From Klebsormidium nitens (taxonomy: Eukaryota > Plantae > Klebsormidiophyceae), in contig DF236962.1 of NCBI GenBank assembly GCA_000708835.1, forward strand, positions 376,712 to 440,711: a stretch of 64,000 nucleotides of DNA. The letters run 5' to 3'. Below are positions 11,601 to 64,000 of this stretch, piece by piece. Made by a program: the position numbers and the translations under genes. Position 1 is the first letter of the stretch. Each line of letters opens with the position of its first letter. The notes below the pieces were generated by a model, which had not been told where the DNA came from, made no database searches, and saw nothing but the letters and a program-made list of their open reading frames with translations.

Positions 11601-14600
11601 AGCCGAGAATAGACCTCTCCTCGCGGGAGCCTGTCCTTGCCCCCGTTCGTTAACCTTTCTCTTTCGTTACTTCAGGTATGGCTGCCGACAACCTCGCGAT
11701 GGCCGCGTACTTTGGAGTGCTCATGAGCTGGCCCACAGGAACAGATGGACAGCAAGACGACGATAAAAACGCAAGAAGGGCACAGTTCGAAAAGTCTGTA
11801 CAATCCGAAAGAGCGTTCGGCGGAGAGTTGTTTGCCGCAGTGAACCAAACAGCTGTGTCGCTGAAAGAAAGACAATTGAACACATCAACGGACCAGAATG
11901 ACGGTGACGTGGCATCTTCTGGACGGGACGGTGAGAACGGGCTCGTAGATGATAGTGGGCGCAGTTTGGGCAGGCTGCAGAGAGCGTATTCACAGCGGGT
12001 TTCGATCAGCGACGAAGCAGAAACACGCAGCCGGGCCGAACCGAGCGGACGGTTTTTGAGAAGCAGCGAAAGCGGAGTCGCTACCGAAGAGGTTCGAAGG
12101 TTTGGGGATGGGGGCTCAGTAAGTGGCACGGAACTAGCGGAGCGAAGCATTTCAGGCCGGAACGCAGGATCTAGCGGAAACGGAGCCGGAAACGGAACAA
12201 CATACGAAACGGGATACGAAACGAGAAGCGAAAGAACGAACGGTGTGGGGTACGAAGAGGGAAAGGCTTATGGACACGGAAACGACGGCGGAAACGGAAA
12301 CGGAAACGGAAATGGAAACGGAGCGGAACGGCTTCGGGAGAACGTCCAGTTGTCTGGGACCGGCGAAATTGGTGGCGAGATGGGCGATAGCGATGAACAG
12401 CACGCGCGCCCAAGTACTGAGGAAGAGCGCGCGCGCCCGAGCGCGGAAAGTGTGTCGTTGTCGTTGGCGGCGGCTGCGGGGTCGTGTTGCCTGGGCCAGG
12501 CGCTAGCGAGCGCCTTGCCACCGGCGTTTGCGGGTGAGAAAACGAAGACTGCTCCAAAGTTCGTGAATCGTTTCTGCGTTTGACTTGAGCATCGTTGTCG
12601 AGGCTGTCCAAGAAGGCCGGAGGTATGCTTTGGATTGCAGGACCCGCTAGTTGGACACGCCAGAGAGCGGAACTTGTGGTTGATCTGCAACTTGAGTGCG
12701 AGTACTAGCTTGAAACCCGGAATGGTAAAAGCTGGCTGGTTGAACTGAGTGAGTTTGGGAGGCTTGGGTTGCGTGTACGAGGTATTGGAGTGTTATAAGG
12801 CAGACTTTTTATGATTGGGCCCAAATAGCAACATGAGAATAATAAGAGCTCATGTGTCATAGTGCGTTACATGGAGCGTCGATGGCCGGACTCAAACGCT
12901 GGGCGTTTATGTCCGACAGGGAATGGTTTAATCAGGACTATAGTCAATTGTCAAAGAGAAAGGCAAGTAGACAAGAGAGGGAGGGCTGTCAACTCCCTCC
13001 TTTGTCAATGCACCACCCTCTCTCTTAACTGATTGCTTTGCTATCACATGTGCATGCTGAATTGCTTTGGGGACAGGACGGCAGAGCGGATAATCTCGTG
13101 CCGTATAAAACGAGAAGATGCATATGCTAGCACAAGATTGGAATGCTTGTATCATGTATCTAGCTTGTGCTACTTTATAGTCTACACCGACATTAGCCAG
13201 GCTCTCGTCACTAATTCCAATGGCAGTTGTACGGCTTTGGAAGGTAACGTCACCCTGTGAAAAGGACTCGCCGTGACATTACTCCTTCCAATCAGCAGGT
13301 TACGTCACCTGACTGTCTGCTTACAACTGGGTGACGTTACCCTTTGAGCTCACATTTGGTACATTTGATTTTCAGGAAGCACACTAGACGTCGGTGTAGC
13401 AATACCAAACCGTCAAGCGTAATGACTTCTATGCGGGGTTTGCACAGTTCAAACCCGGCCACCGACACCTGTCCTCCTTTTCTCCACGAAGGCTAAACTT
13501 TTTGCAGGGCTTTTGGCCCTTCAAACGGCGGCCTCGTTACCGTTGGTTTCAAGACTCGATGCCCGCCTGACAAAGAGCGACTGATGATTCTTGACTCCTG
13601 GTTCCGGAGACGTTACTTGCCTCCTCCATCAACCGCCGGCAGTCCACATGCCTTCGGCCAGTCAGCTTTTGAAGACTGCACGATTTTATCTTTCCGCTTG
13701 ACAGACTACGCTCTTCAATAAGGTACCGCCTCGTATGCAGGTACGGAGCTGGCGCTTATGGCCGTCATCGCGTCGCTTATATCTGTCACTGTGGGTCAAT
13801 TGACGTCAGGGGGAAGGGACTCGGGGCCGCACATTGCGGCGTTTGCGGGCGCGGAGATGATCGGCGGCGCGCTGATGCAGGTCTTCTTTGCCGTGGTACG
13901 TCTTTTTCTTCTTTCGACAATCACAAAGGGGTAAACTTGGGACGCAAGATTGTTCGGTAAAGGTTCCAGACAAGGATCCACTTTGGAGAAATACCTGATC
14001 TGTACGTAGTCAAAATCCGAGCACAGGTCGCTGCATTACAACCCAGAAGTTACCGATTGAACACTCAGAATGGGACTCTTCTCACGTTGTTCTTTTCAGG
14101 TAAAAACAGCAGGCAATTGTCGCATATGTGAAGTAATAAGCCGCTCTGATGACAACGACCCCGGATCGTTGTTGGTTATTTGCCCTTCTACCAAGGAGAT
14201 GGGGTTCATCCCAGGATCAATGCCCTTCAACCAGTTGTGGTTAAGAGCAAAAGCTTTCTATGCACTGTGAGGGCGCTACCGCTACAAAAGAGATGAGTTT
14301 CTGAAAGAATGTGATCTGGAAGTACATTATCGCCCTCGGCACCATCCTCTCAAGAACTTTTGGCTCTACATTTGCCTCAACCATAACGCAGGTTGGAGCA
14401 ACGGCAAGCCTTCAGGAGGCCATCAACGGCGGCTGGCCGCTGCTCATCTTCATCCTCGTGCTGCTGGCCGTCCACGTGGCATTCATCGCCGTCCTCGGCT
14501 CTAAGGTCTTCAAGTTGCCGATCCGTTCCGTGTTGATTGCGTCGAACGCAAACGTGGGCGGTCCGGCGACCGCGGCCGCCATGGCGTCGGCCAAAGGGTG

Positions 14601-15505
14601 GCCAGACCTGGTGAGAATCGGCACACCCGCTTGTGGACAATCGAAAACTCACTTTCTGCTCGTTGTACTCGTGGCTTGGGTTACCTTTCATTGCGCGGTA
14701 ATACCGTCGCGGCCAAAAGGTGGTCGAATTGGTGAGGTTGAAGAACAGGAATGAGGATGCTGATGTAGCGCAATAGTCAGTTGCCCTCACCTGCATTCTC
14801 AATTTTGAATCTGCTTCTGATCGCATATGGACGAGGATGGTCAAAGGCGGGCAATGACGCAATCAGTTTCCGGACGGATAGCCGAGAGGGTGGGAAACTC
14901 GGCTTCGTTCGTTGTTGACATTATTAACTGGCAACTTTGGCCAGCCGGTCAACTAAAAGCTTCTTTTAGTTCAGGAGAACAGAAGAAACATAGCCCGAAT
15001 TGTCGGAGCCTGTCGTTTACCAACTGACTCAGGCACTGTCCGGCGAGAAGTATTTCCGAAGGTCACGCATAGATTCGTCTGCACTCTCAACGAATCTGAC
15101 CATTTACGTCTGATTCTGACTTCTAATTCCAAGTACTGGCGTGACTTTCGGCTGTTGGAAGTTGCCTCGATACGGTCACGTCTGACCGGAACTCCTCGTC
15201 TAGCATCCGTGAGTAAGGTATCGGCGAGCCAAAGTCCACAGTCTCGCAGCAGTATGTGGACGGTGTAACCCATCCAAGCTTAGTACATTTCAATCGCAAT
15301 CGGACTGTCGCAAAGTGTTTGACCATGGCGCCACCCAAGACACAGGGGTGGTCAGTCTTCGGTCTGACCATTCCGGTCTGCTGTCTGACCATTCCGGTCT
15401 GCTGGTCGCTTCCAGGTGCGAGGAGCTTTGCTGACCGGAACGCTCGGCTACACCGTTGGCACTGCTATCGGCTGCCTGGTCGGGACTCTCCTCCGGGTCA
15501 TGTGA
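8684..15505 (+). CDS. DUF819 family multi-pass membrane protein with probable plastid transit peptide
   Basis: Phase-compatible GT-AG exons 8684-9136, 9613-9803, 10426-10637, 11676-12533, 13741-13895, 14392-14610, 15416-15505. Family-like motifs SYVGGSINY, AADNL, ASNANVGGPATAAAMASAKGWPDL, GTLGY. Ser/Arg-rich N-terminus. Confidence 0.88.
10142..10200. repeat. Perfect 19-bp inverted repeat (9-nt loop) preceded by a 15-nt direct repeat, DUF819 intron 2
   Basis: gtgtaagctcctgtggtgt (10154-10172) is the reverse complement of acaccacaggagcttacac (10182-10200); taagctcctgtggtg occurs twice in tandem. Confidence 0.9.
10579..11291 (+). repeat. Degenerate tandem array (~156-168 nt unit, 5 copies) of the DUF819 exon-3 3' end plus donor site
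   Basis: Core gcaggcgctgggagtcgcttc.gg.gcctctttagcagctg|gtaag recurs with donor positions 10638 (real), 10806, ~10969, 11133, ~11289. Confidence 0.85.
12170..12330 (+). repeat. GGAAAC-type coding microsatellite (Gly-Asn repeats) in DUF819 exon 4
   Basis: Repeated ggaaac units encoding GNGAGNG...GGNGNGNGNGNG. Confidence 0.85.
13243..13341. repeat. 13-bp perfect inverted repeat with two internal degenerate copies, DUF819 intron 4
   Basis: ggtaacgtcaccc (13243-13255) and gggtgacgttacc (13329-13341); internal gtgacattac and gttacgtcacc in alternating orientation. Confidence 0.75.
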
Positions 15506-16408
15506 TAGTGAAGGCCTTCACGGGTCAGCCCAGAAGGGAGCACTCAGGGAACCCCCGGCAAATGTTCCCAGAGCTTTACTTAGTTTATCAATAATGCGTA
15601 CGAGATCTGATTTATAGCACTTCCTATATGGCCCTCTATCTATAGGACAATTACTTTTTGCACGCTTTGTTATCGCAGACTTACGCGATAGGTTGAATTG
15701 GAAACGTATTGATGTGGGTTGACGTTGCTTTCGTGCGCGCCGGCTGCTGTGTGCTCAATGCAAGGAGGTCGAAGGCAGCTCTCATCAGAGGGTCGCAGCT
15801 TTGGTCGCGTATATGAAGCCTACTGAGGCCCTTGATGTGTGCTTGAAGCCCGAGTTAGCGTGCGATCTATGTCTTCTTGCAGCATACGAAAAGCTCGTCA
15901 AGAATGACTCGGTGGCAACTTAAGTCCAAGAAATCAAGCATGCTGATGATGTTTAGGCGTCTTGGGTGCTTATGGTGCTAGGACCATGCGTTGGGTAGCA
16001 AGCGACCATTATGCACGCATTTCATGTTTTGAAACTTGTCAGGACAGGATATCTCACGGCCTCCACTCAAATTTGATCAATCAGAATTTAGCGGGATTGC
16101 TTGATCTCATGGAGCTCCTCCGCATGGGGCCAGCGTCGTTCAAGGGCTCCCTGTTCAAGGCCGATTCATCTGAAAAGACGTACGTCCAATTGAATGGAGA
16201 AATGTTTTTTCTAGGCCCCATTGCGGCTATAATTGAATAAAGTGAAATACATACGAATCTTCAAATCCTGACAATGGTCATGCCGGCTCCGGCCCCATCA
16301 TCATGCCATGCACATTGCACCATCTTGGGACAAGCTAGCCATATGTTGGCATGCTATGCAGACTGAACTGCGGGCGAGACTGTCACTCAACACTGCGAGT
16401 CGTGACAG

Positions 16409-16618
16409 TGGGCCATGCACCTTGGTCAGTAGCCGCCTGGCTCTGACTTAATTGTAGCCTGTGAGCCCCCGGCGCCGGTCTGGCTGCGCGTGCCGCGGCG
16501 ATTACTACGCCGCGGACTTCGCGCGGCCGCGCCGCCAAGGTGACGTTATTGCGGCAGGCGTTGGCCTGAATCACGCGCGCACGCTCGCGTTAAACTTGTT
16601 ATATGGAGCAAACCCTAA
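16409..16618 (+). promoter_or_regulatory. Putative promoter: site II motif (TGGGCC) and telo-box (AAACCCTAA) around a CGCG-rich island
   Basis: TGGGCC at 16409, AAACCCTAA at 16610, ~400-600 bp upstream of the ATG at 17008; this motif pair is known from land-plant promoters. Short motifs, so chance occurrence is possible. Confidence 0.4.
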
Positions 16619-17007
16619 TTTCGTCCCTTGGCTCCAGCTTGGCTTGTTAAGGTACTCTGAGCAAAGCTTTCATCTGCTGTGGAATGGTTCTGACGGCCCA
16701 GAAGTTTCCGATTCCCCCAAGTTCATGTGACACAGAGAAGCAATCTGTGCAAGCAATTGGGGGCCAAAATGCTGTTCACACGTTTTGGTTTCTTTGGTTG
16801 GAGGGATCCTTGTGTCAGAGGAAGAGGGCAAGTCCCTACGAAGCGAAGGCAATGATACGAACATAGCGAAGTGATGCTTTGAATGTATATCAGTAGCCTG
16901 CCCAAAGGTCACGCTGAATTCAAGACAGTACTCAATGAAAAGGAAAAACAACCAAGCGGAATGTGGTGTGAGGGTCGTTGTATGGAGCAATAGAGAAGCC
17001 TAACACC

Positions 17008-20000
17008 ATGGTTGAGGAAGCAGAGGGCAAACGGGAGGACCATTCTGAAGACATCTTTGATGGCATTCAGGTGAGAGTTGATGGGCTGGAAGTGCTGGGG
17101 TCGGTTTGAAGTAAAAGGGGCATGGCACGATCCACAGAGGACATGTAACCTTGAGCAGTCAAGGGCTTAGAATGACTTGATGATGTACCCTGACTCCTCG
17201 ACTTCGAGGAGATGTCGTACTTTGTACTGAAAACTTTGTTTCACATCTGTTTCATATCATCAATTGCAGTCGAGTTCAACAGCTGTAGGCTTATGGCTAC
17301 TCTTCATAAGCCTCTGTGCAACTCATGTTGCTCATTGTTGCTAGAAATGTGTAGCTTGCCAAATGTCATGTTAGGCTTACCAGATTTTAAGATGTTCTTA
17401 GAGGTGACAAGGGGCAGCAAAGATGCGAAGCTGTATTCCCAGTCCAGCGTAGTCTGGCAGGGACTTGATGTCAGAAGCGGATGAGCTTCAGCAATTTACC
17501 AGCCCCAGGCATGCTTCCAGTCATGGCCCCATTGCAATCAAGCCCCATGCTGGCCGAGCCATCAATTGTGTGCGTCCTGCTCCTCTAGTTGGTATGTAGA
17601 CTTGCATTTGAAAAGGCTAGTACTGAGAAGTGGGTTAGATCTCAATCAGCAAATGGTTCAACTGCTTTAACGGCCAGATTGGGCCACTAGTTGACATTTT
17701 ACCTATTCATCAAGATGTGAAAGGATTCCTTGCTCACAGAGCCAAGAAGACAGCCAGTCAGCTTTCGAGCCTGACATCTGGTGTGGCCCTATGAGCTGGG
17801 TTCTTTGATCAGGTTTGTCTTACATGTGGTGTCTAGCTCCATCAGACACCTGCAAAGAGGACACACATTCCCAATCAAAACTATGAGCTTTTCTGGACAA
17901 TGAAGATGCAGAATATGCATCCGCTTCTTATCTTCTGTCAGGAGGATGATGGCGCAAGCGATGATGAGACAGACAGCTTCAAAGCAGCCTCGGAACAAGC
18001 ATACAAGCAGCACCTAGAGGAACAAAGCCGGCGACAGGTAAGAAGAGCTCCCAAAAGGGTTCGACTGATAAGTTCAAGGTGGGAATAGTCAAGAGAAAGG
18101 TTACCATTTGGCTTTTCCAAGATTTCCTGGAGAACAAGAAATAAAACAGCACTGGGTGATACTGTTTTCCAGGTTGTGGGGACTTCCATGATTGAAAATG
18201 GCTCTTAAGGATGAGTAGCAGACAGTCGACCATCCTAGCTTAAGCAGAGCTTGATCATGATTGTTGAACTGGCTCGAGAGAACAGGTAAGAGAGTGTTCT
18301 TGCAGGCAGCTCTCGTGAGAAGTACTGAATCCTAGCCCGACCCGATCAGGTTGCGAGGGAGTTGAGATTGCCGGGTGCATGTCAAGTCCCAAAGTGGAGA
18401 TAAAGCTGCCCAAAGTGGTACAGGCACGGATCAGGCTTATTCTCGAGTGATAGGCCCTGTATTCCCTGACTCCGGATCTCTTTCCTGTTTCTTTTTCCAG
18501 AGTCTACGACCTCGAACAGCTCCAACAAGGCCTCAAACCCCGAGCAGTGCAGACAGAAAGCGGAGAGCTGTTGAGCAACAGGACGAACGTTTCAGGGTAA
18601 GTCCCAAACGCTCTTGTCGGGAGGACAACAAGTGAAGGCAAGTCAAGAACGACAGCGAAAGCGTGCTGTCACGAGTAGATTGCCGACAGTAGAGTTATGT
18701 TAGCTGTCTCCAACCGAATCAAAGAGGAAGGGAAGGTGAGACCTCGATGTGAAGTCGATGGGAGCGAACACCTCCTTGAGTGCGGTTCGAAGCTGGATAT
18801 CTTGACTGACCGGTGTGGTTCAAGCAAGGGAGCTGAAGTCGCGCTTGGTAAGCGAGGGACTTCGATTACATTTGGGCTCATTGCAATCCCTGGTCAATCG
18901 TGTTACTGAAATATGGGAAGATTCGGAGAGACGTTGTCAGACAAGGCTGCCGATATTTCGCCTATTGACAATGCTTGATATGCGACCTTTGACGAACTTC
19001 ACCAGAACATACTTCGTACAATGGAGAGTCAATACCCTTCCTCCATCAGCAGCCAACAAGGAAGTTTCTTCCGACGGGAAATGTCCTCCAGACGGGCTGA
19101 GGGACTCTTCAGAAAAGCTGGAAACAAGTCAGGAAGCTCGAGCAAGTTTTTCCAATTCACTGCAGTTCCGTCCTGAGACACCCCGTGTCGATTACGTCCC
19201 CCCCCGGCGGCCAATCACCGGGCCGGAGATCGACCACGCCGCCTGGGGCTTCTGGCTGAGCCCCGGGTGCTCGTACACTCAGCTTATGGGGCCCATAAGC
19301 AACCGGCCGGCGACCGCTTATGCCCCTCGAAAAGTCACGGAGTCTCTGGATTGGCGGGATGTTGTGGGGAGGCAAGACAAGGGACGGCAGCCGTGGCAGG
19401 ACGTGAAGCCGTGCGATGTAAACGGAGCGTCAAAGGTACGACACTTGTTTTGCTCATGTTCTGTCACTAAGGTGTAAGTTCGCTCCTTAACCTTCGCAAT
19501 GAATAACGAAGTCGGTTGCCGATCTGGGCACGGTGCTCGTGAAAGGCTCCGAATCGCCCCTTTTCTTCTGGTCGTGCGACGAAGGTGCAGCAGGGTTTGT
19601 CAACAGCTTAACCGTGTATGAAGCTTGGTAGTCGTGTTTGTCTTTGATCAGCAGGTTTTGCAATGTCCCGGAGAAGATGGTCGCAACTGTTGACAATCTG
19701 TGCAGGATGTCAAGTATTTGTGTAGTCAGCTGATTGTGTTCGATGCGGGACGTCTTTCAGAGTGCTTATACGGTACGTGCTTCATTCTCGGGAGCGTGTG
19801 TTCGGCTGCCGAAGGGCTTTCATGGAGCAGCGCTGGTGTGTGGAATTGGATGAAACAGAAAAAGAGCGCGTTTTATTACATGCCACCGCCAGCCGTGAAT
19901 GCCAAACGCGTCTGCAAAAGCCGGCATAAGTGGGTGTTCGGAGATTGGCGCAAAGAAGGCCGCTGACGTCGGGACACGGAGGCGTCATGACGTCATCACT

Positions 20001-23000
20001 TTCCTCCCTCATTCAGGATGCGAATCATCGGCAGCCGTACGGAGAGGAGCCGCAGTTTGCAGCAGCGGCAACCCCCCGTCAGACGACGTCCCCTTACCTG
20101 TCTGGTCCCAAGTATCTGCGACGGCCTTTCTCCGCGTCCGTTGCGGATAAACGGTACGATCACGCTTCCCTCATCTTAATTTTACGCCCGATGCATTTCA
20201 AGTTGTTTCTTGTCGGAGGCTGGCACTTCTGTTGCGCATCAACCTCACCTTCTCGAAGCGGAACCCTTGGAAAGTCGTGGCTTCGCGGCTCTAGATTCTC
20301 CGCGTTGACTCCAAGTATTTCGTGTTCGGCTAAGGGGAGCTTACATGGGAAGGAGCTGAAAGGATGCTCGAAGAGCTTTGCAAAGTCTAGAACGCATTGG
20401 ATCATTGGACAGCACCGTTGGAAGAGTCGGTTGGATTGCGGGAGCTGGCGTTGCAAAAGATGTTTCTTATTTGACCGAGCAAAAACGTCAGGGCTCGCCC
20501 TTATAGTTATGAACCGGAATCAGATTGCTCATCTGGAAGCACTTTGAGTTAGTCAGCATAACTTTTTACGAATCAGCAGACGAGAGGTCAGAAGGGCAAA
20601 GCCCCTACAGGAAGTTTCGTCAAGACTGACTTTCTTCACGATTCAATTGCAGACGGAAAATGCAGAATAAAGGGTCCCCCTCGGCAGCCGTCCGGGAGAG
20701 CCCACTGCGGCGGCGGAAAGAGTCCGCCGGAATGCGGATAGACAACCCAACCGAACGGAGCGGAGCGGAACGGAACCCCGAGGTCCAGAACCCTACTGAC
20801 CGTGCGGCTCAGCCGCCTGGAGGCGCGGAGCCAAACCGTCTGTCCGGCAATCCGGCATGCGACTCGGACGCTCGAGCGGACTGCAACCCACCAGCGGAAT
20901 CCGCTGCTCCGGACTCCGGTCCTGCGAGCGGATCCCCTCATCGAGCCGCGCGCCACATCCCGTTCATGGCTTCTATCGAAGAGCGGCTGCAGAGTATGAG
21001 CATTGCTGCCTCAAGCCCGGGCGCTCAAACCTCCAAACCTGTTTCTCCGGACACGCAAAGCGCCAGACCTTTGGTTCCGGACGTCCAAACCCCCTCCAGA
21101 CCGGTTGAGTCTCAGTCCCCGGCCGAGTTGACCAATAGTCAGGCGCCACGTGTCGATGGGCCAGCTCATGGAAACGCAAACGAGGGCGTCGAGATGGACG
21201 GTCAAAACCTGGACGTACGGATTCCGCCCACCGCAGATATCGTTCCGCCCACCGCAAATTCCGTCCGTTCCGACAATTCAAGCCCAGACTCGAATCCACG
21301 CCTGGAAACGGAGGCAGAGACCTGCGCTCTCCCGGCCTCCTTTCCGGCGCGGCCTTTCACTGCGGGCGTCGCGCGCCGCGGCTCGAGCGACCTAAACCCT
21401 CCAAACCACTCGCGGCCCGCGACGGCGCCCGTCAAGCCCTGCGTTCCGTCCCTGTCCGAGTCGTTCAGCAGAATGGGTCTCGGGAACGCGGCCCCGGAAA
21501 GCGGCGCCGTCAGCGGCCGGTCGGACCTGTACCGGAATCCGCTGTCGAGCCGGAGTTCTGCCGGAAAGGCGCCCTCGGCGTACACGCGGCGGGTCATGGC
21601 GCCCCCGCAGTTCGTGCAGCTGACGCCGTGGGACGCCAATATCGTCGAGGACGTGCTCGAAAAGGTACGTACCGGGCTGAGTTTCGTTATCCTCTCAGCT
21701 TGCCTTCTCTTATACTCTCAGCTTGACTTGTGTAATCCTCTCAGCTTGATTCTGTCATCCTCTCAGCTTGATGTATTACAAGAAATCAGGCTCCCCTTTA
21801 TCTGTGAAATCTTTCGGAAGGGTCAGATCCTGGAAGGGACTCGACCCTCATTTTCAACCAGAGTATTGCTCTTGTCTTGTCTTCGCGTCCTCAGTCTCTG
21901 TCCGTCTACATGCCATCTATACCCGGTCAAAAACTCAGCGCTCCCACAATCTCATGAAAGACTGGAGTCATACAGCCCGGTACGAGAACAACTTGCTGGC
22001 CTATTCGCCCGGTAACCTTTGCATGCAGGACGACCACGAGAAAGGTCGGTCGGCGTAGTCTGAGCAGGCCTTGCTCTGAGGCACTCCCCTTAGAACACTA
22101 CGAAGCCTGGTCAAGCGGCAGGCGCTTTGATCCTGATCTGGATCCCGCTGTCTTTTGAAGCATCGTAGTTATGCCTGCGCTTAAGAGCAGCAGCCATCAC
22201 CAAGTTTGGCAAAGAAGCGGCTCGTCTCTGGAAGAAAACCCTCACTATCTGACAGCGCAGGCCTCGTTAAATGACAGGTTCGACATTACGGACAACTTCC
22301 TCACAGCTGACGGGAACCCATACGCAAGGGACAGTCCATACCAACTTCCAGTAAACTGTAGATCAGCCTCAAGTACCTTGAATTGACTCTGCCCCCTCTA
22401 CATGATTCTAACTTCTTCTGGGCGAGCAGGGACCGGGGCAAGTGGGGCACGTACCCGAGGAGCGGGGCATCGTCGAGGGGGTAGCCGGGGCGGGTATGCC
22501 GGCACAGTTCCGTTTTGGGGACGGTCGGTTGTGGATGTTGGGCAGCATGTTGTGGGCGACGCCTTGCGGCACGGAACCTGGGCCCAACCGGTGGAAGAAC
22601 CACTAAAAGTTGGCTTCCCCTCCCCGCAGGTGACGGAGGCCAACAAGCTGTCCCGCGCCATAGGCCTATCGGTGCGCTACAACATGTTCCAGAACGGCAA
22701 GAAGGACGTGTGGGTCGAAGTGTACGAAGCGCGTACGCTCGTGAAGCACAAAGGATCGGACACGTCATCGCTCGAGCGGCGAGAGTGGCGCGAGACGATT
22801 GAGGACCCCGCGGAGGCGGCCGCGCAGTCGGCCACGCGAAACCCCGACGCCGGGGACCCCGGTGAGCGCCCGCGCGCGCGCGCCTCTCCGCCCCTCCGTA
22901 ACCGTATTTTCATGTCATGATTGAAGTTTCTAAACCCTGAAGTTTCTAAACTCCCAGTTGTGTTTCCTTGCTTCGCCGCGCGCCTCTTTTGAAGCTTTGT

Positions 23001-37395: not shown

Positions 37396-37777
37396 GTACT
37401 TGCGATAGGGTAGGTACTCGCGAGCCTGTGCGCAACCGTCGTTGACTCCAATCTTCATTCCGGTACCTGCGTTGCAGTGTACAAGACAAGAGGTAGGTAC
37501 CGGCTCTCTGACAAAAGTTCGTTGTAGGTACCTGGTCCGTACGTGGGAACTTTCAAGGTACGGTACCTCGGATACCCTACTAAAAGTAAAAGTCTCATGT
37601 AACTAGGTAGGTAACTACCGGCCGGCGGTACCTAGAAGGGTGCATACCGCCAAAACTCAAGGCAGGGAGGTACAGACCAGGATGGAGAATAAGGTACGTA
37701 CCCAATACTAGCTTAAGTATATAGGTACCAATTTCGCGATGGGACTCATGTACCGTAATGTACAAGGTACTAGGTAC
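37396..37777. promoter_or_regulatory. Dense GTAC/GGTACC cluster in the divergent intergenic region between prmA and the ARM gene
   Basis: Manual count: 18 GTAC (7 as GGTACC) in ~380 bp versus ~1.5 expected. Regulatory function is an inference. Confidence 0.5.
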
Positions 37778-50400: not shown

Positions 50401-53400
50401 GTGGTGTGCCAGGCGTTCCAGGCCATTGTTGCTGGTGCTGCTAACTTGATGAAGTCCAAGAAAGCAGAGCATAGTACACTGAACTCTTTCCGCCACGGGC
50501 GCAAAACACGCTTCTCTTTGTTGGCTTGCTTGCTTGTCTACTTTCCCCATGGCGCTCCGATCGTACCTGTCACGTCGTTAGCATGGAGCAATCTTGAAGC
50601 GAACACGCAGACCCTCTCTTGTTTTGGCGGTGTTCGTGAAACCAATCAACTTTTTCTATGGATTGCTTTCTTGGCCGAAGCATTACACCTTACTCTGCTT
50701 TTGAAACCTTCCTTCCATTGGCAGGTGGACGATTTGCTGTGGGTTGTGCTATCGAGGAAACTTCTCAAAACGACGTTTCTCGAGATCCTCGTACACTGCC
50801 AAAATCAAAATATTCGGTCAATCTTACAAAGTTAGAGTCTCAAATTCTAGCTCCTTGAATTGACATTTTGTCGCAACAGGTCGCTGTGAAGAGGGACGCA
50901 ACGCCTTGATACGCGCCGGGGGCGTCCGCGCCCTTGTCGCCGCCCTTCAGTGCTCGGAACCCGGGCCAATTCCCCCGGGCACCCCGACGCCTTCCGTTCC
51001 GCCCGGGGGGCTCTCCCCGACCGGAACCGCGGCCATCGCCCAGCTTTTGAGCACCCTGGCAGTGCACCACCCCGAGGCCCGATCGCAGATGGCGTCACTG
51101 GGCGTCCTCCGACCGCTCGTCGACGTTCTGATGGGCGGGAGACGATCCCCCGGAGGGAAAGAAGAGGAGCCCGGAACGATCGCCCAGGAGGCCGCTGCGG
51201 CCGCGCTCGCGAACATCGTCCAGGGGGATCCCGCGAGCGCGCGCGAGGTCGTGGGCGCCGGCGCGATCGCGCCGCTCGTGCGCGCGCTCGAGGGCGGCGG
51301 CGAAGCCGCCGCGCGAGCGCGCGGTGCGGCTGCGGCCGCGCCAAACCCGGGCGGGCAGCTCGCGGCGATGACGGCGCTCGCGAGCCTGGTTCGCACGNNN
51401 NNNNNNNNNNNNNNNNNNNNNNNNNNNNNNNNNNNNNNNNNNNNNNNNNNNNNNNNNNNNNNNNNNNNNNNNNNNNNNNNNNNNNNNNNNNNNNNNNNNN
51501 NNNNNNNNNNNNNNNNNNNNNNNNNNNNNNNNNNNNNNNNNNNNNNNNNNNNNNNNNNNNNNNNNNNNNNNNNNNNNNNNNNNNNNNNNNNNNNNNNNNN
51601 NNNNNNNNNNNNNNNNNNNNNNNNNNNNNNNNNNNNNNNNNNNNNNNNNNNNNNNNNNNNNNNNNNNNNNNNNNNNNNNNNNNNNNNNNNNNNNNNNNNN
51701 NNNNNNNNNNNNNNNNNNNNNNNNNNNNNNNNNNNNNNNNNNNNNNNNNNNNNNNNNNNNNNNNNNNNNNNNNNNNNNNNNNNNNNNNNNNNNNNNNNNN
51801 NNNNNNNNNNNNNNNNNNNNNNNNNNNNNNNNNNNNNNCCGGTTGATGGCCCTGGTAGCCCCCCCGGGGCAGATGCGGCAGATGAAAGAGACGGCGGCGC
51901 TGGTGCTTACGGAGCTCGCAACGGAGGACGGGGAACTGCAGGAGACGGTCGGGGGGTCGGGCACGATCGCGGTGCTCGTGGGGATGCTGAACGGGCCGGG
52001 GAAGGGGAAGCTCGCGGCAGCAAGTGAGTGGATATGGAACATGGTTACGATGTGCACTTAGAAACTAACAGGGATTGAAGGCATGGTTGCTTGAACTAAA
52101 GAGATAAGAGCACGCATTGATTCTTGACCAATTGGTTGCTTGACCGTGCTAGTCCCGTCCGTGTCTCTCTGATGCTCTGGGGCTTCTCTGAACTTGTGCA
52201 TCGCCGAAAGTCATCAAATCCTCAAGATATTACAGGAGCAGAGAGTCCAGTAGACGCGAAGAGTGTCTCTTTAAGCCTCCGGATCGTGGTTCGTGTCGAT
52301 CATGTTGCACCTTAACCAAGCGGGAGAAGACTTGCAAAGTACGAGCCGCCAAGTATGGGCACGGATCCACTTAAAGGGGCCTCGCGGCTTGATAAGAAAT
52401 GCTCGCCAGAGCACCCAAGAAAAACACGTCAACTCGACCAATTTATTTTGCATGAGCGCCACGTTCTAAGGAGCTCAACGTCCCAACCCTTTTTGCAGGG
52501 GCGCTGTCTATCCTGACCTCTCGGAGCGAAGCCAACAAGCACCGCGCGCGCAACGCCGGCGCTGACGTCAGCGTCCTTAGCACCCTCAAGTTCCCCGGGC
52601 AGACGGAGCCGCCAGGGGCATCCCCCGAGAAGCTCGCCAAGACGGGGCCACAGCCCCCGGGGGGCCGGCCGACTTATCAGGGGGCGCGTCAGCCGCTCAC
52701 GCAAGTGCCTGGGGGAGCCCCCCGGGCAGTCAACGGCCCGGGCAAATTTTCGGGGGGGAGGATGATCAGCGGTTTTGGGGGGTGGGGCAGAACCAGGCGC
52801 CGAGGGGCCCGCAGAGCGTGCGCCAGGTGGGGGTCGGGGGGGGTAACTTTGGCCCGGGACATTACCCCGGGCAGATGGCCGGGGGAAGGGGCCCCATTGT
52901 GCATCATATCCGGGTGCCCCAACCACGCGCCCCTCAGTACTACCGACCGGCTTATACGGTAGCACCGGCGACGAAGGCCGTCCCTCAGCGGCCTCCGAGC
53001 GCATTCCCACCATCGGTCATTTACACCCGGGCGCCCGTCCAGCGCCCGGTAGGAGTTGCCGGGCAGTCCTACGCGGCTCCCGCGCAACAAAACGTGGTGC
53101 GAACGCTTTGCGCCGGGGGTGAAATCGGCAAACGGGCCAGGGCGCCCGCCTGGTGTGGAGATGAGTACGCAGGCGCAGTCGGTTCCGGTGCCAGAGGGCC
53201 GGAATCCGGCCGGAATGGGAAGCCAAACGCAACCGGCAACCGCCCAGGTCAAGGTTCCGGTGGCAGAGGTCGGGCTTCAGGTGTCCGCGCAGATTCCGCC
53301 TGGGGGGCCGACACAACCAACGGAAACCGGAGCTCAAGGTCATACCGTCCTGAATAGGGGTACTGTCAAAGGCCCTGCGGATCAAGCAGCGGTTACTGAG

Positions 53401-54255
53401 CGCCGTCCGATGGAGAGTGGTCCGAAAGCGACGGCTGAGATGGGCTGCCAGGGCCAGCCGTTGCCGGTGCAACCTAGACCGGTCGCCACTGAACTGTCTG
53501 AGTGGTCGAAGGTACAGATGAAGGTAGTTGCTGACGTACAACCTAAGCCCTTAGTGGCGATCGAAACGGTACCCAAAGCCACACCGGCTGTGACCGAACC
53601 CCCGAAACCGGCGGTTAACCAGTCCCCAGCAACTAACCCGGCCCCTGACCCAGTTACTCATGAGATCAGTCGCCCTTCACCGATGCCTAACATGGAAGAG
53701 AATCTTGCTAATCGGCAGGAGCCGACAAAAGCTTTCCCAGACGAAGCCGCCCGCGCGCCTGCCACGTCAGCGGACGTGGACGGGGCGCCCAGGATGACGT
53801 CAGCGGCCCGCGCGGGTTCGGATCTGAGCCTCCAGATGCTGGCGGAAGTCACTGCGGCAGCGGAAGCGGAACGAGAACTAGAACGGACTCAATCAGAGGT
53901 AAAGCTCGGTTCCACAATTTCGGGGGGGACAAAACGGGCGCGTGGGGAGGCGGGCGCAAGGCCGCCGCTTGCCGAGGGAACGAGTTCCGGCGGTGCGCAG
54001 CAGCGGACTCCGGTGGAGTCGGACGGGCTCCCGCGGCCACCCAAGAAGCCGCGGACGGGCATGCACCGGACGCCGTCCAAGCTGGTGGCGGAACGCTTTC
54101 CGAGTTTTGCGGAAGACGCAAAAGAGCAGCAAGGCCAACTGAGGGGGGGGAGTCCCGGCTCGGATGAAGCGGAGCGGAAAGACAGGGGCAACGAAACGGC
54201 GTCGGAACGAGGTCGCCGCACGAGACTCCGTGGGCCTCCTCAGAGGCTCGGTTAG
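38424..54255 (+). CDS. Very large Armadillo-repeat protein (~3,400 aa) with long disordered insertions and NLS-like basic clusters
   Basis: Phase-compatible exons 38424-38573, 39568-40317, 40856-41057, 41608-41702, 42248-42376, 42666-42842, 43255-44096, 44468-47735, 48225-50112, 50880-(gap)-52023, 52499-54255. ARM motifs AGAIPPLVDVL, AGAIPPLVNLL, YGAIPFLIRMV, AGGVAPLVKIL, AGAIAPLVRAL. The last exon has frame inconsistencies. Confidence 0.8.
49292..49392 (+). repeat. Coding tandem duplication (~54 nt; KGEEASVVEP twice) in the ARM gene
   Basis: aaaggcgaggaggcgtcagtcgtggagccg and aagggcgaggaggcgtcagtggtggagccg. Confidence 0.8.
51398..51838. other. Assembly gap (441 N) inside ARM coding sequence
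   Basis: Run of N. The ARM-like frames on either side differ, so the gap length is approximate or the gap contains an intron. Confidence 0.99.
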
Positions 54256-55647
54256 TGGGCCAAACGGCTGCTTGTTTCGTATTCAAAGAGAAACTGCGAC
54301 AGTCTGGGAGTCAGCCTTCATAATGACCGTTCTGAGCATTTCCGACTACATGAGCGGGTTTCAAAACCACTGTATACTAGCAATATAAGTTAAAGCGACT
54401 TGATTAAATCAGCGCCGGGCCAAAGCTTGCAAAAGCGTTCATTTTTCGGGCCGCCATGCTGCAGTCTTTATGCATTTCGACAAACCTTCCTGCCACCACT
54501 ATATACTGCTCCAAAGTATAACGATCGATGCAAATGGATTAGTACTACAGCGTGTAAGTGGCGACATGTTTTTATACAACGCCGCGGCGTCTTGCAAGAC
54601 ACCTAGGGCATCATTCTCCATGCAGCTTGATTGTCTGCACTACTCTTCAGAGCGCCTAGCTTGCACCGCATATCGGATGTAAATTGCGCTGCATTGACGC
54701 GATGGCAAGCGGCGCATCTGAGGAATCTATATCGTCGCTTGTGCTGGCATACAGTGCGCACTGATAGCCATGAACAATCTACAACTCATGCCGCCGATCA
54801 TGATGGCACACGGGTGCCTGCCTTTTCGTGTAGGAAAGAAGAGTTACACCGGACTCGGGAGACCGCGCGCCGCGCACGCTGGCAGATCGGACTCGGACCA
54901 TGACAGCGTGACACATCCTAAATCAAATCAAACATGGTCGGAAGTCTACGTTCAGGATAAAGGGGCCGAAGTCCTGTTACCGGTGAATTCAATGAAATGA
55001 TTCAAAGGAGCTTCAACCTTAAGGACCTAAGCGCAGTCAGGCGATGCGAACGGGTAGATTACAGCCAAAACCCCTCTCGGTGACAGGTCTCTGACACGGC
55101 GCTCGAACTAGTCATATGTTTGTGTAAAAGGCTTTTTTTATCCAGCCCCGATACTACAAATTGTAGCATACCGTCGCCTGACATACAGTACACTACGCGG
55201 ATTGCCTGTCCCACACTTCCTGATCCTGCCCTTACGGCATATAAGCTACTGCAAAATGCCTCTGTGGATCTGAGATACGCTCCCTGTGATCTTGTCGCGC
55301 ATCCGTACGTGTCGCGCTTAGGCAAGAACAGCTCCCACTACTGCAAGAAGTTGCCTTTTGATCTCTAGCTAAAAGTGCTGCCAAACGCAGCTAGCACAAC
55401 CAAACTGCCAAAAGAGCTGCCGTCATTAAGTTAGCGACCCCAGTCGCAAAGCTGTCTACAGTCAACCCAGCTTAGTCTACAGTTGGAATGCTGATCGTCT
55501 CCCACACTTTTCCGAGGCGGACCGCAGTGGTAGTCTGGGTATGTGCCCTATCCTTGCACGTCCCAAACTCGGCAGCCTCAGGTTACGGCACCGAATTCCC
55601 ACTGGCAACACGAGACCCTTCCGCATCAATCCAACCCACGCAAGCCC

Positions 55648-58600
55648 TCAACTGGCGCTGGCCCCCTCCTCCGGAGCAAACAGCTCCGCGTACGACGTCA
55701 GCAGCATGCCCATGTACTCCAGGATGACGTCATCCTTCGTCAGCTGCTCGACCAGCGCGAGGGACCGGACGGCCATGTCCCGGAGCTCCTCCTGGCGACC
55801 CTCCGCGCCTTGGAGCACGGTCAGAAGGTCGCCCAGATCTTCCGCGTAACGCACGTAATGCGTACCCGCCTCGAAGAAGAAGTCGGAGAACTCGCGGTAG
55901 TGGGTCGACTGTATGGAAAAGGGCAGCCGATTAGTTGGGGGGTTTATTCAACGGCCAACAACTGGAGACGGGAAATACGACCCGGAATCGACAACGATGG
56001 ACGAATCTGGGGAAGGATTTCGGATCATGCTCCGGAGATGCTATGAGGTTATGGATCCGGCACAAGACCGGCGACTGATCCCGAGGATTTTGAGTTTCTG
56101 GACATAAACAGTGACTTTGACTGCCCGCAAGTGAAGTACTCAATTCGGAAAGAACCGCCATGGGAAGAGCCACTTGTTTTCTTTTAGGGATTTCCATCTT
56201 CTGGGACGAGCAAGGGTGTCGCAACGGAATCCAAAACGAAGTTGACCGCTTGCAATCGGGAAAGAATCAGGAGGGTATAATGCACGCGCGCACCTGCTTG
56301 AAGATTGTGGCCCCCGACGCGAGCAGCTGAAAGAAGCGCGAGCTCCACGACTCGCCGTCGATGTCCACCAGATACTTGCGCTCCATGTAGTCCGTGAAGT
56401 TAGCCAGCCGGTCAGCGTAACCCAGCTCCTGGTTAAGAAGTACAAGGAGGTTGAGAAAACTCAGTAACGGGACGCGGTTGGGGAACTGGTTTGCTTTGCC
56501 GGTCAGCGTAACCCAGCTCCTATTTGAGCAAAACCCGCGGGAGACGGTTGTGAGTAGTCTGGCGAAGTCGGCTGGCAAGGTACCGCTCGCAACGTTCATT
56601 GGTTAAACCCTCCTCATTTGGTGAGCTTTTTTTCGTTTTGTTGGATTTCTTTCCCGTATGCAGCCGGTGAGAGGGCGAGGGTTGGTCTGCGTAAGACAAG
56701 TCCTGGTTTTGCTCCGGAAGCAAGAGCGGATCATAACCCGGCCTTGTTCGTTCTAGCGCGGAAACTTTCGTAAGGCTTTGACTGTCATCCACAACGGGCT
56801 TTTGAAGGACAGATGGTGAGAGTCGTGACTGAAAGAATTTGCCGCTCTCGCATCGTGCTTTGCCTTCAGCGGTCCAAGAGAAAGGACAAAACGACGGCGT
56901 CAACGCTTCGCTTCGACTTGAGGATCTCAGAAAAGTTGAAGGGTAGGATTCGAACTGCGAAGGTTATTCAAAGACGAAGTGGACAGATCGCAGATTATAT
57001 CAGGACAGACAGCACAGAAAGGCTAAGGCTTCGGCAGCTGTCCTGTTTGCGGGGCACCGAACAAAGGCGGACATTCCGCAGATTTGAGATGAATCGGCTG
57101 GGGGGACAAGCCTCTATGCTGTTCGTTACCGTCGATAATATCATTGTATAACATGCTCCAGGTTGCTCCTAAAGAGTTCCTTAGCGGTGGTCCAACTCGC
57201 GGGCCTGGTCTCAAAAGCTGATAGCTGAAGCTCGAGATTGTACTCTTCGACTGGCTTCACCGGTAAGATTCGGACGGCTGTAGCAGAAGTTTGCCCGTTG
57301 CCGGTGGCCGGTGGTTCTGAGTCGCAATGCATATTTTAGATAGAAAATCAAGCGATCAACCCCACATTTACCCCAGCCGATTGCTACTGGATTCCGGACA
57401 TGCTACACCCAATACTAACTCCTCCTTCTAGAGACTTCCAACGTGGTAAACAATCTAGTTCCAAGGAGCAGATTTGGCCACCGTTCGAGCAAGAACAGAA
57501 AGCGCCTTGCTTGTTGCATTGCGAGATCAGGGAGCGCTTCACTTGTCTTTAAGGCGCAATTTTGACCACCCAATAAGCAAGAAAAGGGAGAGCTCACCTT
57601 GCCGATCGCTTCTCTCGCGGCCTGGGTACACTGCCCGTCGGCGCACTTTGTGAACATGGCGTCGAGAAGTTCGGGGTTGGCCTTGGACAGCATCACCAGC
57701 TGGCTGCGCGCCTTCTCCTTCCAATCTTCAACCCGGTACAGACCGCCTGCGGAACAGAGAGAGCGGTTCGTACCGGCTTTTTGACAATGCGGCCTCTCTG
57801 AAAGTAAAGTGAATCGAGGGGCGATTGTAAGCTATTTGTCGGGGATAGAACTGGCACGAAGCAGAGATAGTTGTTCTAAGGTTAGGGATTGTAAAGAGCA
57901 AAGCGTGGGCAATCTTGATAAGAACTCTCCAGCGGGTTACATTTGGTGAGCGTTTCGTTGAACGATCAAGGACAGCTCCCATGAATCGACCGCAGTTGGT
58001 GCCGCCAGAACGTCAAGGGAGTGTATCTACTAGATTGGAGGAGGTAGTAACGATGTCGCGTCTGCCTGGAGATGGTCATAAGAAGTAGTAGTTCGTTCGT
58101 CAACAAGCAGACAGAGAAAGACAGGATATTATGTTTGGAAGAAAGGTTTGGGGTCCTGCAAACATCTCGTGCAATGTTGAGAATTGTCAAAGAGGAAGCA
58201 GAGAGAACCTTCCAATCGGCGGCGAGACAGATTAAGTGCGCTTCGCTCGCCCAAGTACAGGGAAGCAGACGCGGGCCTGACTCTGCAACGAACACGACCC
58301 GTTGCACGACGTAGAAACGGGGGAACCAGACTGTAACCGGAGCGAGCACGGATTCCGAACCAAAAGCGTAACGACCTGCCAGTAACAAGTTAGAAACACG
58401 GTACGACCATGCAATGACGACGCAGTACAAGCTTTCCGTATCCTGAAGCGGATGCCCCGACAGCCTTGGAGGGATCCTACGATTACCGGCAATCAAGCTT
58501 TCGAGGCATGTCAGTTCGATACTCATGAGCGCCTAATTAAACGTAGACCTCGACGAAGCAAGGGACGAGCGTAACCCTTGAAGCAGATATGACGAACGTA

Positions 58601-61600: not shown

Positions 61601-61729
61601 CAAGAACTGCGAATGCCGCAGGTGAACCACCAGGATGTGGAAAAGCAGGATCACGGTTACATTTCGGTACGAGAAGAAGGAACGCACAGACGGGACCGAT
61701 GGGAAACTCTTTTTCCCTAGAAACTTCAT
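55648..61729 (-). CDS. Glycosyltransferase family 90 (CAP10/POGLUT-like), type II membrane protein, 640 aa
   Basis: Minus-strand exons 61573-61729, 60119-60855, 59454-59614, 58867-59189, 57598-57746, 56294-56428, 55648-55908 total 1923 nt in frame. N-terminal hydrophobic segment VTVILLFHILVVHL; motifs PVLSYC, WEGRRGSALWRGSPTG, KYLVDIDGESWSSRF..LLASGATIFKQ, HYVRY..DLGDL. Confidence 0.9.
56497..56522 (-). repeat. Echo of the GT90 exon-6 acceptor plus first 22 nt, 91 nt upstream of the real site
   Basis: ag|GAGCTGGGTTACGCTGACCGGC occurs at both 56519 and 56428. Confidence 0.9.
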
Positions 61730-63913
61730 TGTGGAGAGAACCGCAGGAAACTCATTCCAGCTTTTACCACTTGGTCCTTGATGAGCTCACAACTGCCGGT
61801 CTAGCAGCTGAAAGCGTCCTAGAAGCTTCCAATCGTCGCAGCCTTTCTCTTCTCAGTGCATTCCCATATATATTCGCAAATCCGCAGCTCTGATGTGGCC
61901 GCTTGAATTCATGCCTGATCTTCTCAAGAGGCGAAGACTTTTCTTTGATGTGACAGAAACTCGAAGCTGCCAGCATTGCCAATGGTTCACCCCTTTGCTT
62001 AAGTTCCTATCAAAGCTGCTGCTGGCCCCATGAGTAAATGCAGAACGAAGATTACGGTGAAACCGCCTCCCCATGATTCAATGATTCATCTTTCTCCAAG
62101 TGGCACCCTGCCAGCTCCTAGTACTATGTGAACGCCCATCTGGTTTTAAGTTTCACAGGTAGTCACTTCAAAGGCGTTCAAGAAACTGCATGGCTCCACC
62201 CTCGAGCTCTAGCCTCTAGGATAGATCAAACAGGAAGACGAAGATCTCTACAAGTTCAGCATCTCGATGTGCTGCATTCACCACACAACTGTTGATCAAG
62301 GACTGCAGTAAACTAGGTAGTATTACGAAATGCTCAAATTGGCACCAGGTTTGAGGCAGACTTCTGCTATGCTGGGGCCATTGCCAGAATTCACGGTGAA
62401 GTTACAGTTTAAGTAGATAGTGCCTGCCTGAGCCTGCCACGTGAATATACAAGGCTATAATATAGGAACATGCTCATTGGTAGTCCTGAGCTTGCTGCAA
62501 TGATTGAAACTGCGTTGCGCAGCTTTTGGTATCCAGGGCGGACTGAACGGCGGCAGACCCGGTCATGGTACGGGTTATGTTACATGTCCACGATTAAAAA
62601 TGTTGTGTTTAGTGAAGTATTTTAGGAGCCCCGGTCGCCTCAACAAACATCTCATGACCCAAAACACCTTTACGCTTCCACCCATTTGCAACCTACGGTC
62701 TACTTAGCTATAATATCTAGGCCCTATTAAATAGCCCATCCTAAGTACTATAGTCCATAATCCAACCCCATACGCCCCCGGGTGCCAGTGGTCACTCTGA
62801 TTTAAAATTTTGCAGTTGAACCGTTGAAAACCTCGTTCCCTCATTAATTTTAATTGAATAAAGGAATCCTAGCCTTCTAACTACCGTTCTACGTTGCCAA
62901 TGCACCGTAACGTACGGAAATTCCGGGCCGCCGCGGCCCGCCCGGCCCGGGGCCGCCAAACATCATGCATGCCACAGCAACTTATTTAGCGTTAAATTAA
63001 ATTGATCAAAAGGAATCTCCTTCGTTAACATCAAAATACTTAACCTTCAAAATTGTCTCCTCCATATTAGTTTACCTTCTAAATTCCCAAGCTAACCCCA
63101 TCCGTTTGAGGCTGGCTAGATATTAAAGGGTGAACTTGTACCTAAATTGGCCATGCAAACTACGCGTTCCAATGTCAGATGCGAATAATGCGCGGCGCAG
63201 CAAGTGACATCATTCGGGTGTCGTACAACGGAGACTTGCCGAAATATAATCAGCTGGAAGTACGTCCCGACTCCCCACTACCCGGGGGATGAGACCCGGG
63301 TTCTGGAGTCCCGACTCGTGCTGAGTCGTGACCCTTGGACTGTTCCGTCTCAACCGGTCGGTAGAACATACCTATCGCAGTCGGATTTGAAATGTTACTG
63401 GATGTACCCTTTATACACGGGAAATTATTGGTAGATTTCCAGGAATCACGTGACCAGCCCTCTTAGCTAGTGGCCGGAATTGTGGGATCCCCCTTGCGCC
63501 GAGCAACAGAAACGGCAACAACCTCGTGAGTAGCTCCCTGATTCACTGAACTGAAGATAGGATAGGTAGGCAAGTAGGTACCACGGCCGGTCAGCTTTCG
63601 AACGGGAGCACTGAACCGGCTGGAAACAGAATATTGCTGTCTGGTCGATCAGCAAAGTGCGCACTGCCCAGGCGGCATTTATTATCGAGATCGACGGTCG
63701 CTATGTACCTAGTCCTACCGTCACATTGCAGCCCAGAATGAACAATCTGAGGACACCACGCTCATCAGCTGGAGACGTGGGACTCCTATACCTGGCGATG
63801 GTCGCTGGAGCACGGGTGCCAAGGGCCGCACGGCGGCCCCTGGGAGGCGGCGACGACCTCGACTTACGAGGAATTATACACCCTTTTTACCCCGCACGCG
63901 GCATGACCCGTAG

Positions 63914-63945
63914 TGCGTTTGCGAGGGATCGAACCCAGGTCCCTC
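63914..63945 (-). other. tRNA 3'-half-like fragment (B-box/T-arm), possible tRNA pseudogene or SINE head
   Basis: Minus strand GACCTGGGTTCGATCCCTCGCAAACGCA resembles tRNA-Gly-type 3' ends; no A-box, D-arm or complete acceptor stem is recognisable within the window. Confidence 0.3.
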
Positions 63946-64000
63946 GCAGGCATTGACGTCATCATTTCATCACCCAGTGAAGGGGAAATCCCTACGCCTT

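Follow-up and report, generated by a model that had tools for sequence, protein, structure and literature searches.

Why does one exact 8-bp palindrome recur throughout a stretch of algal DNA in which about one copy is expected? The stretch, hereafter the window, comprises the final 64 kb of scaffold DF236962.1 of Klebsormidium nitens, a charophyte alga in which the bodies of active genes carry CG methylation (de Mendoza et al. 2018, PMC5890265), and the element is the palindrome TGACGTCA. An earlier note on this DNA, made from the sequence alone, had likened it to the highly iterated palindrome 1 (HIP1) of cyanobacteria and suggested that a genome-wide process might be writing it into the DNA. 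Our results suggest a different emphasis, namely that the palindrome is kept by selection as a binding site for a DNA-binding protein.

Abundance of the palindrome in the window

Counts for K. nitens covered the 64-kb window, in which positions are numbered from the first letter, and the 8 kb upstream of it. The window held 18 copies of TGACGTCA, and every coordinate listed in the earlier note was exact. In 100 dinucleotide-preserving shuffles the mean was 0.82 copies and the maximum 4, and Markov models derived from the window expected 0.85 (order 1), 1.13 (order 2), 2.05 (order 3) and 2.42 (order 4) copies, an overall range of 0.8–2.4. The excess was 9–22-fold (18 versus 0.82–2.06), and TGACGTCA ranked first among all 8-mers by z-score under the order-3 model. 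The hexamer GACGTC occurred 37 times, 18 of them with the T and A flanks that complete the palindrome and only five with the runner-up flank pair.

Composition, chance local to the window, misassembly or the remnants of a dispersed repeat could in principle produce such a count. A compositional origin would draw on the GC-rich character of the region, which encodes a low-complexity protein, and on the Markov models of orders 5 and 6, which expected as many as 6.9 and 11.8 copies. These expectations are high because the models contain the 6- and 7-letter sub-words of TGACGTCA itself. When the sites were masked, TGACG (141 versus 132–155), TGACGT (31 versus 27–35) and GACGTC (19 versus 16–22) were all at expectation in the window, and the half-sites and GACGTC were likewise at expectation in the relatives described below. 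The enrichment is limited to the full palindrome. The CpG observed/expected ratio of the window was 0.93, and local composition predicted 0.1–0.4 copies per 8-kb block; the observed series, beginning with the block upstream of the window, was 1, 0, 1, 1, 1, 3, 6, 5 and 1, the copy in the upstream block lying 1.2 kb before the window start. The flanks were unique at all 18 sites, and comparison of the window with itself revealed no repeat family there, indicating that TGACGTCA is not a dispersed repeat; an origin from a repeat or transposon was rejected on the ground that nothing beyond the core was common to the copies. Independent transcript contigs reproduced the sites that they covered without differences, so that these are not an assembly artefact. 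Together with the coding-sequence shuffles and the enrichment in relatives reported below, these observations exclude composition, chance, misassembly and repeat origin with near certainty. The word TGTCCAAG was not associated with any TGACGTCA site in the window.

The density of sites was very uneven. A giant gene on the forward strand, at approximately 39500–56000, encodes ARM repeats, a long low-complexity acidic and Ser-rich centre, and ARM repeats again; it carried 0.67 sites per kb, compared with 0.15 per kb in the rest of the window. The earlier note had remarked that no copy lies in the first 13.8 kb, which holds a cluster of F-box-like genes. The remark is true, but the absence is not significant, with approximately 2–4 copies expected there at the window's own rates.

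Independence from codon and amino acid usage

Coding constraints were assessed on a spliced, transcript-confirmed coding sequence of 6078 nt that forms part of the giant gene. It contained six copies of TGACGTCA, against a mean of 0.23 in synonymous-codon shuffles, none of 5000 of which reached six, and 0.06 in shuffles of codon order. Among all 8-mers, TGACGTCA was the one with the largest excess over the synonymous shuffles. A peptide context was taken to permit the palindrome if it was [L/M/V]-T-S, or if it was x-D-V and the codon of the next residue began with A. Six of the seven such contexts in the coding sequence carried TGACGTCA, although only 0.24 were expected to do so from the codon usage of the gene; in three orthologues, the fractions were 6/9, 2/5 and 3/7, against 0.12–0.26 expected in each. 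Codon or amino acid usage does not explain the excess.

The protein encoded by the same sequence contained 15 Asp-Val (DV) dipeptides where 7.1 were expected, which suggests that TGACGTCA also marks the protein sequence. The claim that a force at the DNA level shapes the protein is borne out by this excess and by the occupancy of the permissive contexts. So is the claim that two reading frames are used, as the exonic sites of the giant gene comprise six in the xDVx frame and four in the [L/M/V]TS frame.

The NotI palindrome GCGGCCGC was considered as a second iterated palindrome. It occurred 14 times against 2.6 expected, between positions 9116 and 51332 of the window, and was also high in all relatives. 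It was rejected because it showed no excess over synonymous shuffles in the coding sequence, and its abundance is attributable to Ala-rich coding.

Enrichment in related algae

A search with a 1126-aa exon recovered orthologues with 80%, 65% and 51% BLASTP identity (79% and 56% in full alignment). The three contigs that carry them, L005 from a Logan assembly and L006 and L007 from two Joint Genome Institute (JGI) metagenomes, were collinear with the window at 37.8–56 kb; a further contig, L011, was 96% identical to L006. Judging from these similarities, we infer that the contigs stem from relatives of Klebsormidium.

The orthologous loci contained eight copies of TGACGTCA in L005 (0.14–0.58 expected), six in L006 (0.27–0.70 expected) and three in L007 (0.17–0.25 expected), and L011 contained three. 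In each of L005–L007, the palindrome ranked first or second among 8-mers by z-score. When L005–L007 were pooled with three unrelated loci (L002–L007, 102 kb in total), 21 copies were found against 1.4–2.8 expected. Six non-orthologous loci of the relatives (77 kb), found via a lineage-specific F-box-like family, contained six copies against 1.2–2.0 expected (P = 0.0015–0.017), a 3–5-fold excess. The excess of TGACGTCA is therefore a property of the clade and is not specific to the window, and it is far stronger in the giant gene. The concern raised in the earlier note that enrichment might be confined to the window is answered by both the orthologous and the unrelated loci.

Structure of the giant ARM-repeat gene

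The earlier note had placed the exonic sites in four unrelated genes. This does not agree with our results, since the 11 sites between 40130 and 55725 appear to belong to one giant gene, 10 of them exonic and one (47938) intronic.

Transcript support came from contigs of two runs from two studies, which were compared over 43000–48999. These contigs matched the window without differences and skipped two GT..AG introns on the forward strand, one of 371 nt at 44097–44467 and one of 489 nt at 47736–48224; such spliced joints show that the contigs derive from transcripts. The reading frame joined correctly over both introns. One contig connected 43253–43724 to sequence upstream of the compared stretch, and by estimate the length of its upstream part fits the upstream ARM-repeat exons. 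Farther downstream, the frame continues into more ARM repeats by way of a donor (GTGAGA, near 50112) and an acceptor (CAACAG, near 50878), and a third intron probably lies at about 50113–50878. Blocks conserved in the relatives extend to approximately 55.9 kb. Frame continuity, the ARM repeats and these conserved blocks together suggest that the sites at 40130–55725 lie in a single gene. The stretch at 49.3–49.75 kb could be rejected as a regulatory module of a downstream gene, given that splice signals and ARM repeats carry the same gene past 50.1 kb.

The same spliced joints on 43000–48999 were found in run X17 (an organism coded C, listed as 'DNA?'), with 4–9% differences. The joints imply that this run is RNA-derived, and the differences point to a related species or strain.

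An assembly gap of 441 N at 51398–51838 interrupts the gene, with both flanks within one exon. The left flank ends in GGQLAAMTALASLVRT; on the right, the sequence from 51840 is RLMALVAPPGQMRQMKETAALVLTEL. In the L006 orthologue, 15 codons separate the two flanks in one open frame, so that the gap probably stands for only some 45 nt. In the assembly, the right flank is shifted +1 relative to the frame on the left, which indicates that the 441-N length is arbitrary and that a 373-aa open reading frame (ORF) running through the Ns (50906–52027) is partly an artefact, its right side being out of frame. No TGACGTCA site lies near the gap, and none is affected by it. An exact look-up of the 1126-aa ORF gave no match, and a Pfam search of most ORFs in the window gave no domain.

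Conservation and turnover of the sites

Codon and nucleotide alignments of the window with its relatives covered about a dozen sites, all in the giant gene. Between the window and L006, which share 77% nucleotide identity in alignable blocks, five of six TGACGTCA sites were intact, compared with 16% of aligned 8-mers overall and 13% of those that have CG at the centre (Fisher's exact test, p = 6 × 10−4). Third positions of codons for the same amino acid were 0.545 identical in this pair, which gives a chance of approximately 0.16 that all three synonymous positions of a site stay unchanged; by our own arithmetic, the probability of finding five of six sites intact by chance is approximately 5 × 10−4. 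The orthologue comparison proposed in the earlier note thus revealed conservation at synonymous positions above background.

The individual sites differed in their histories. At 43446–43453 (DDVS), the palindrome and its 21-nt context were the same in L005, L006 and L007, and the 8-mer was also present in L011. Only 68 bp further on, the site at 43514–43521 (VTS) was present in L006, L007 and L011 and had been lost in L005, which reads TAACGTCA. The site in the first ARM exon at 40130–40137 (LTS) was present in L005, with TGACATCA in its place in L006 and L007. L005 also retained the sites at 44022–44029 (GDVS), at 49591–49598 (MTS) despite a different preceding base, and at 49682–49689 (NDVT), where nearby synonymous positions differed. 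At 44022–44029, the transcripts of coded organism C read AGACGTCA, with A at 44022, a synonymous GGT/GGA difference. Three sites in the downstream part of the gene were present in L006, namely 52563–52570 (ADVS frame, in conserved ARM-gene sequence), 53795–53802 (MTS frame) and 55725–55732 (DDVI frame). The site at 46910–46917 (DDVT) was found in K. nitens only, L005 having GGACGTCA with a change from Asp to Glu, and the intronic site at 47938–47945, within the 489-nt intron, had no alignment to the relatives. Conversely, L005 had TGACGTCA where the window has the one-letter variant TGACGTCG (43545–43552) and the CpG-transition variant TGACATCA (43566–43573). At 51090–51097, the window reads TGGCGTCA and both L005 and L006 carry TGACGTCA, indicating that this site was lost in K. 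nitens. One loss could be polarised: at a place where the motif is retained both in L007 and in L011, the close relative of L006, L006 itself reads TGATGTCA, and the change in L006 is thus a C>T loss at the CpG. On these alignments, TGACGTCA sites far outlast the surrounding sequence and yet turn over, partly by CpG transition.

This pattern bears on the process favoured by the earlier note, a HIP1-like writing in which sequence-specific biased repair, methylation-directed very-short-patch (VSP)-type correction or biased gene conversion neutrally creates TGACGTCA from any near-cognate sequence, and the sites have no function. Such a process would readily account for an exact motif that occurs in exons, an intron and other DNA, in two reading frames, overriding codon choice and common to the whole clade; CG gene-body methylation in K. 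nitens (PMC5890265) also counts in its favour, and continual drive could imitate conservation. Correction towards the palindrome should, on the other hand, deplete the words one mismatch away, and these showed no depletion (33 versus 24.8 in the window, 37 versus 34.4 in the relatives). The T:G-mismatch products TGATGTCA/TGACATCA, which arise by CpG transition, were in approximately 4-fold excess instead (8 versus 2.1 in the window, 10 versus 2.7 in the relatives). This excess, along with the polarised loss in L006, suggests that TGACGTCA decays rather than being repaired. The neighbours TGACGTCG/CGACGTCA were also in excess (6 versus 1.9 and 8 versus 2.6, respectively). Several-fold differences in density among genes and the co-enrichment of a second motif described below are likewise not what repair of a single motif predicts, and for HIP1 itself conservation has been counted against neutral replenishment (PMC5861425). 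A mutational writing process therefore fits worse than a selected binding site, and we rate it as unlikely.

A signal acting in RNA was also weighed, in which an RNA-binding protein would recognise UGACGUCA in the mRNA and thereby enhance splicing or affect stability or localisation. By a rough count, the giant gene has about 14 distinct orthologous sites, of which 13 are exonic, with exon making up approximately 69% of the region, and synonymous positions are constrained, as such a signal would require. This exon bias is marginal and could be caused by faster decay in non-coding DNA; moreover, not every site is exonic, as one falls in an intron and several in DNA where no exon is recognisable. 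A signal in RNA also leaves the symmetry of the motif to coincidence, considering that palindromes make up only 256 of the 65,536 octamers, that TGACGTCA is exactly the canonical bZIP DNA site and that the co-enriched motif is itself a DNA palindrome. We give this explanation only a slim chance.

Co-enrichment of the G-box

Two palindromes are classically known to be bound by bZIP dimers with high affinity, the C-box or cAMP response element (CRE) TGACGTCA and the G-box CCACGTGG. The G-box was also over-represented, with four copies of CCACGTGG against 0.6–0.9 expected in the window and 11 against 1.3–1.6 in the relatives. For GCCACGTG/CACGTGGC, the corresponding counts were nine against 1.4–1.6 and 25 against 2.7–3.2, so that G-box 8-mers were enriched 6–9-fold. 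The excess was again seen over synonymous shuffles, with six versus 1.34 in the test coding sequence and eight versus 1.29 in L005.

The G-box or abscisic acid-responsive element (ABRE) palindromes GCCACGTG/CCACGTGG of the window, at 14472, 21145, 44623, 49322, 49513–49522, 49716, 49739, 59125 and 62436, are largely exonic. The exonic cluster at 49322–49749 combines four CACGTG hexamers (49324, 49515, 49716 and 49740) with two TGACGTCA sites, giving six ACGT-core sites in 420 bp, and includes the 10-bp palindrome GCCACGTGGC at 49513–49522.

Proposed selection on a binding site

A force acting at the nucleotide level, the need for the full octamer, the heterogeneity among genes, conservation accompanied by turnover and the G-box co-enrichment together point to selection for sites at which a dimeric protein, most plausibly a bZIP, binds double-stranded DNA. 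We put the probability of this explanation at about 0.5. Of the three options offered by the earlier note, a chromatin-binding code agrees with it best. The uneven density, the conservation at synonymous sites and the G-box all run counter to a mutational writing process, as do the neighbouring words and the excess of transition products.

According to this explanation, TGACGTCA would be a DNA element common to several related species and maintained by selection. The exact, dyad-symmetric C-box/CRE octamer would be read on double-stranded DNA by a dimeric protein of the bZIP class, at sites embedded in gene bodies, mostly in exons for weakly constrained protein. These sites could be accommodated by synonymous and near-neutral codon choices in the xDVx and [L/M/V]TS frames. 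Sites that are lost, partly by C>T change at the central CpG, would be replaced by new ones, as is seen for binding sites under stabilising selection. The palindrome occurs alongside the G-box GCCACGTGGC, which is likewise a canonical bZIP palindrome of plants. Its role may lie in regulation within genes or in organising chromatin, and CpG methylation at its centre might act as a gate.

Several observations weigh against this explanation. The majority of the sites fall within coding exons in the interior of the giant gene rather than in promoters, which is unusual for transcription-factor sites, and the half-sites and degenerate variants that bZIPs normally tolerate are not enriched. The conservation test comprised few sites (five of six intact), all within one gene. 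In the comparison with the closer L005, five of seven sites were intact against a background of 29%, a difference that is not significant alone and can be regarded as suggestive only.

The exonic location also speaks against classical promoter function, and it is one reason to consider a selected architectural site that organises chromosome or chromatin domains, as has been envisaged for HIP1, with a dimeric reader that is not necessarily a bZIP. In favour of such a role, TGACGTCA shares the signature of HIP1, an octamer palindrome in more than 10-fold excess that lies in and between ORFs and is conserved. Strong local clustering and heterogeneity from gene to gene are less easily reconciled with it, and the G-box co-enrichment suggests the bZIP family. 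An architectural site of this kind is, in our judgement, decidedly unlikely.

Selection on a bZIP-type site could be combined with an architectural role. Klebsormidiophytes would then carry a eukaryotic counterpart of HIP1, a gene-body chromatin or architectural code kept in exons by selection, read by a bZIP-type protein and possibly switched by CpG methylation. This reading is tentative, and we do not regard it as probable. An extrapolation from 0.15–0.3 sites per kb over approximately 104 Mb would give it ten to twenty thousand copies of TGACGTCA. It would further require that the force of selection suffice to determine the choice of synonymous codons and of certain amino acids, at sites that are not classical promoter elements, a proposition that we consider possible but doubtful.

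Comparison with known systems

HIP1 (GCGATCGC) is the highly iterated palindrome of cyanobacteria, where it reaches a 15–300-fold excess (Xu, Lawrence and Durand 2018, PMC5861425). TGACGTCA shares with it the form of an exact palindrome of 8 bp centred on CG, an excess of more than 10-fold in the window, occurrence in more than one frame and outside exons (once in an intron), and conservation between genomes above control words (5/6 versus 16%, in a small sample from one gene). The sequence itself is different, however, and the host, a streptophyte alga, is a eukaryote that has introns and nucleosomes. The excess is also smaller than that of HIP1 (9–22-fold in the window and 3–5-fold in the relatives' unrelated loci), the density is strongly gene-dependent, and transcription factors of eukaryotes are known to use the same sequence as a binding site. 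Thus, TGACGTCA resembles HIP1 in abundance, placement and conservation but is not a member of the HIP1 family.

The consensus CRE/C-box palindrome was exact at all 18 sites, and the clustered co-enrichment of the C-box with the G-box CCACGTGG (six sites in 420 bp) and the binding-site-like turnover are in keeping with bZIP cis-elements. In contrast to the classical elements, which are proximal to promoters, tolerate half-sites and variants and are not 10–20-fold over-represented across gene bodies, at least 10 of the 18 sites occupy coding exons well within a gene, and enrichment is confined to the perfect palindrome.

Very-short-patch repair by Dcm/Vsr skews oligonucleotide frequencies in enterobacteria. 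It resembles the present case in providing a DNA-level cause for the over-abundance of a word related to a methylation site, but it predicts a deficit of T:G-derived neighbours where we found an approximately 4-fold excess.

In the literature searched, which was not a complete survey, we found no paper that links TGACGTCA with Klebsormidium and none on its genome-wide iteration in a eukaryote, in line with the earlier note, which knew of no described eukaryotic HIP-like system. The searches did return background work on the methylome and the bZIPs of K. nitens, none of it dealing with this motif. If the iteration extends genome-wide, this would be, as far as we found, the first hyper-iterated exact palindrome conserved in the coding sequence of a eukaryote. 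It would then indicate that, in a close algal relative of land plants, synonymous sites and protein sequence can be constrained at large scale by a DNA-binding code, and would provide a tractable eukaryotic system in which to study the purpose of HIP-type motifs, since the methylome of K. nitens has been published, its strains can be cultured and its bZIP family is small. As TGACGTCA is the ancestral plant bZIP site, its distribution also bears on ACGT-element regulation before land plants.

Other features of the window

The remaining seven copies of TGACGTCA lie outside the giant gene. One is located at 13801–13808 within the span of a DUF819 gene, an exon of which gave no match in the protein collection. 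A second, at 19988–19995, lies within the ORF at 19930–20544 in the MTS frame. The motif scan gave a copy at 30500–30507; the copy at 32794–32801 opens a trio spanning 1.3 kb, with the others at 33807–33814 and 34059–34066. The last copy, at 63954–63961, lies in a stretch of approximately 135 nt (63859–63992) with a tRNA-like T-arm, GGTTCGATCCC. An inverted, non-syntenic copy of this stretch was found at L007:2135–2266, with TGACGTAC in place of the palindrome. An ARAGORN scan at 63.9 kb called no tRNA, and the stretch is possibly a tRNA-derived short interspersed nuclear element (SINE).

The lineage-specific F-box-like family has three members on the scaffold, where all K. nitens members used here are located; copies were found at 1982–3133 and 5207–6474 of the window and at L001:7362–9105. 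It comprised 38 representatives among 1.84 billion proteins, and was without a Pfam domain. The ten members that were looked up came from the scaffold, Logan assemblies or metagenomes; of six contigs carrying the family, five were from one Logan run and one was from a European Nucleotide Archive (ENA) metagenome. The ORF at 1982–3130 is identical to the NCBI protein KFL_000130570.

A GTAC-rich array at 37396–37777 was visible as over-represented GGTACCTA/GTACCTAC words, found seven times in the window against 0.63 expected, and five times against 0.15 in orthologue L005, in its upstream region; the array seems to be conserved in that relative. Comparison of the window with itself also revealed a tandem duplication of approximately 210 nt at 30056–30427 with 80% identity, and an inverted pair of 255 nt at 5–257 and 6098–6351 with 74.5% identity.

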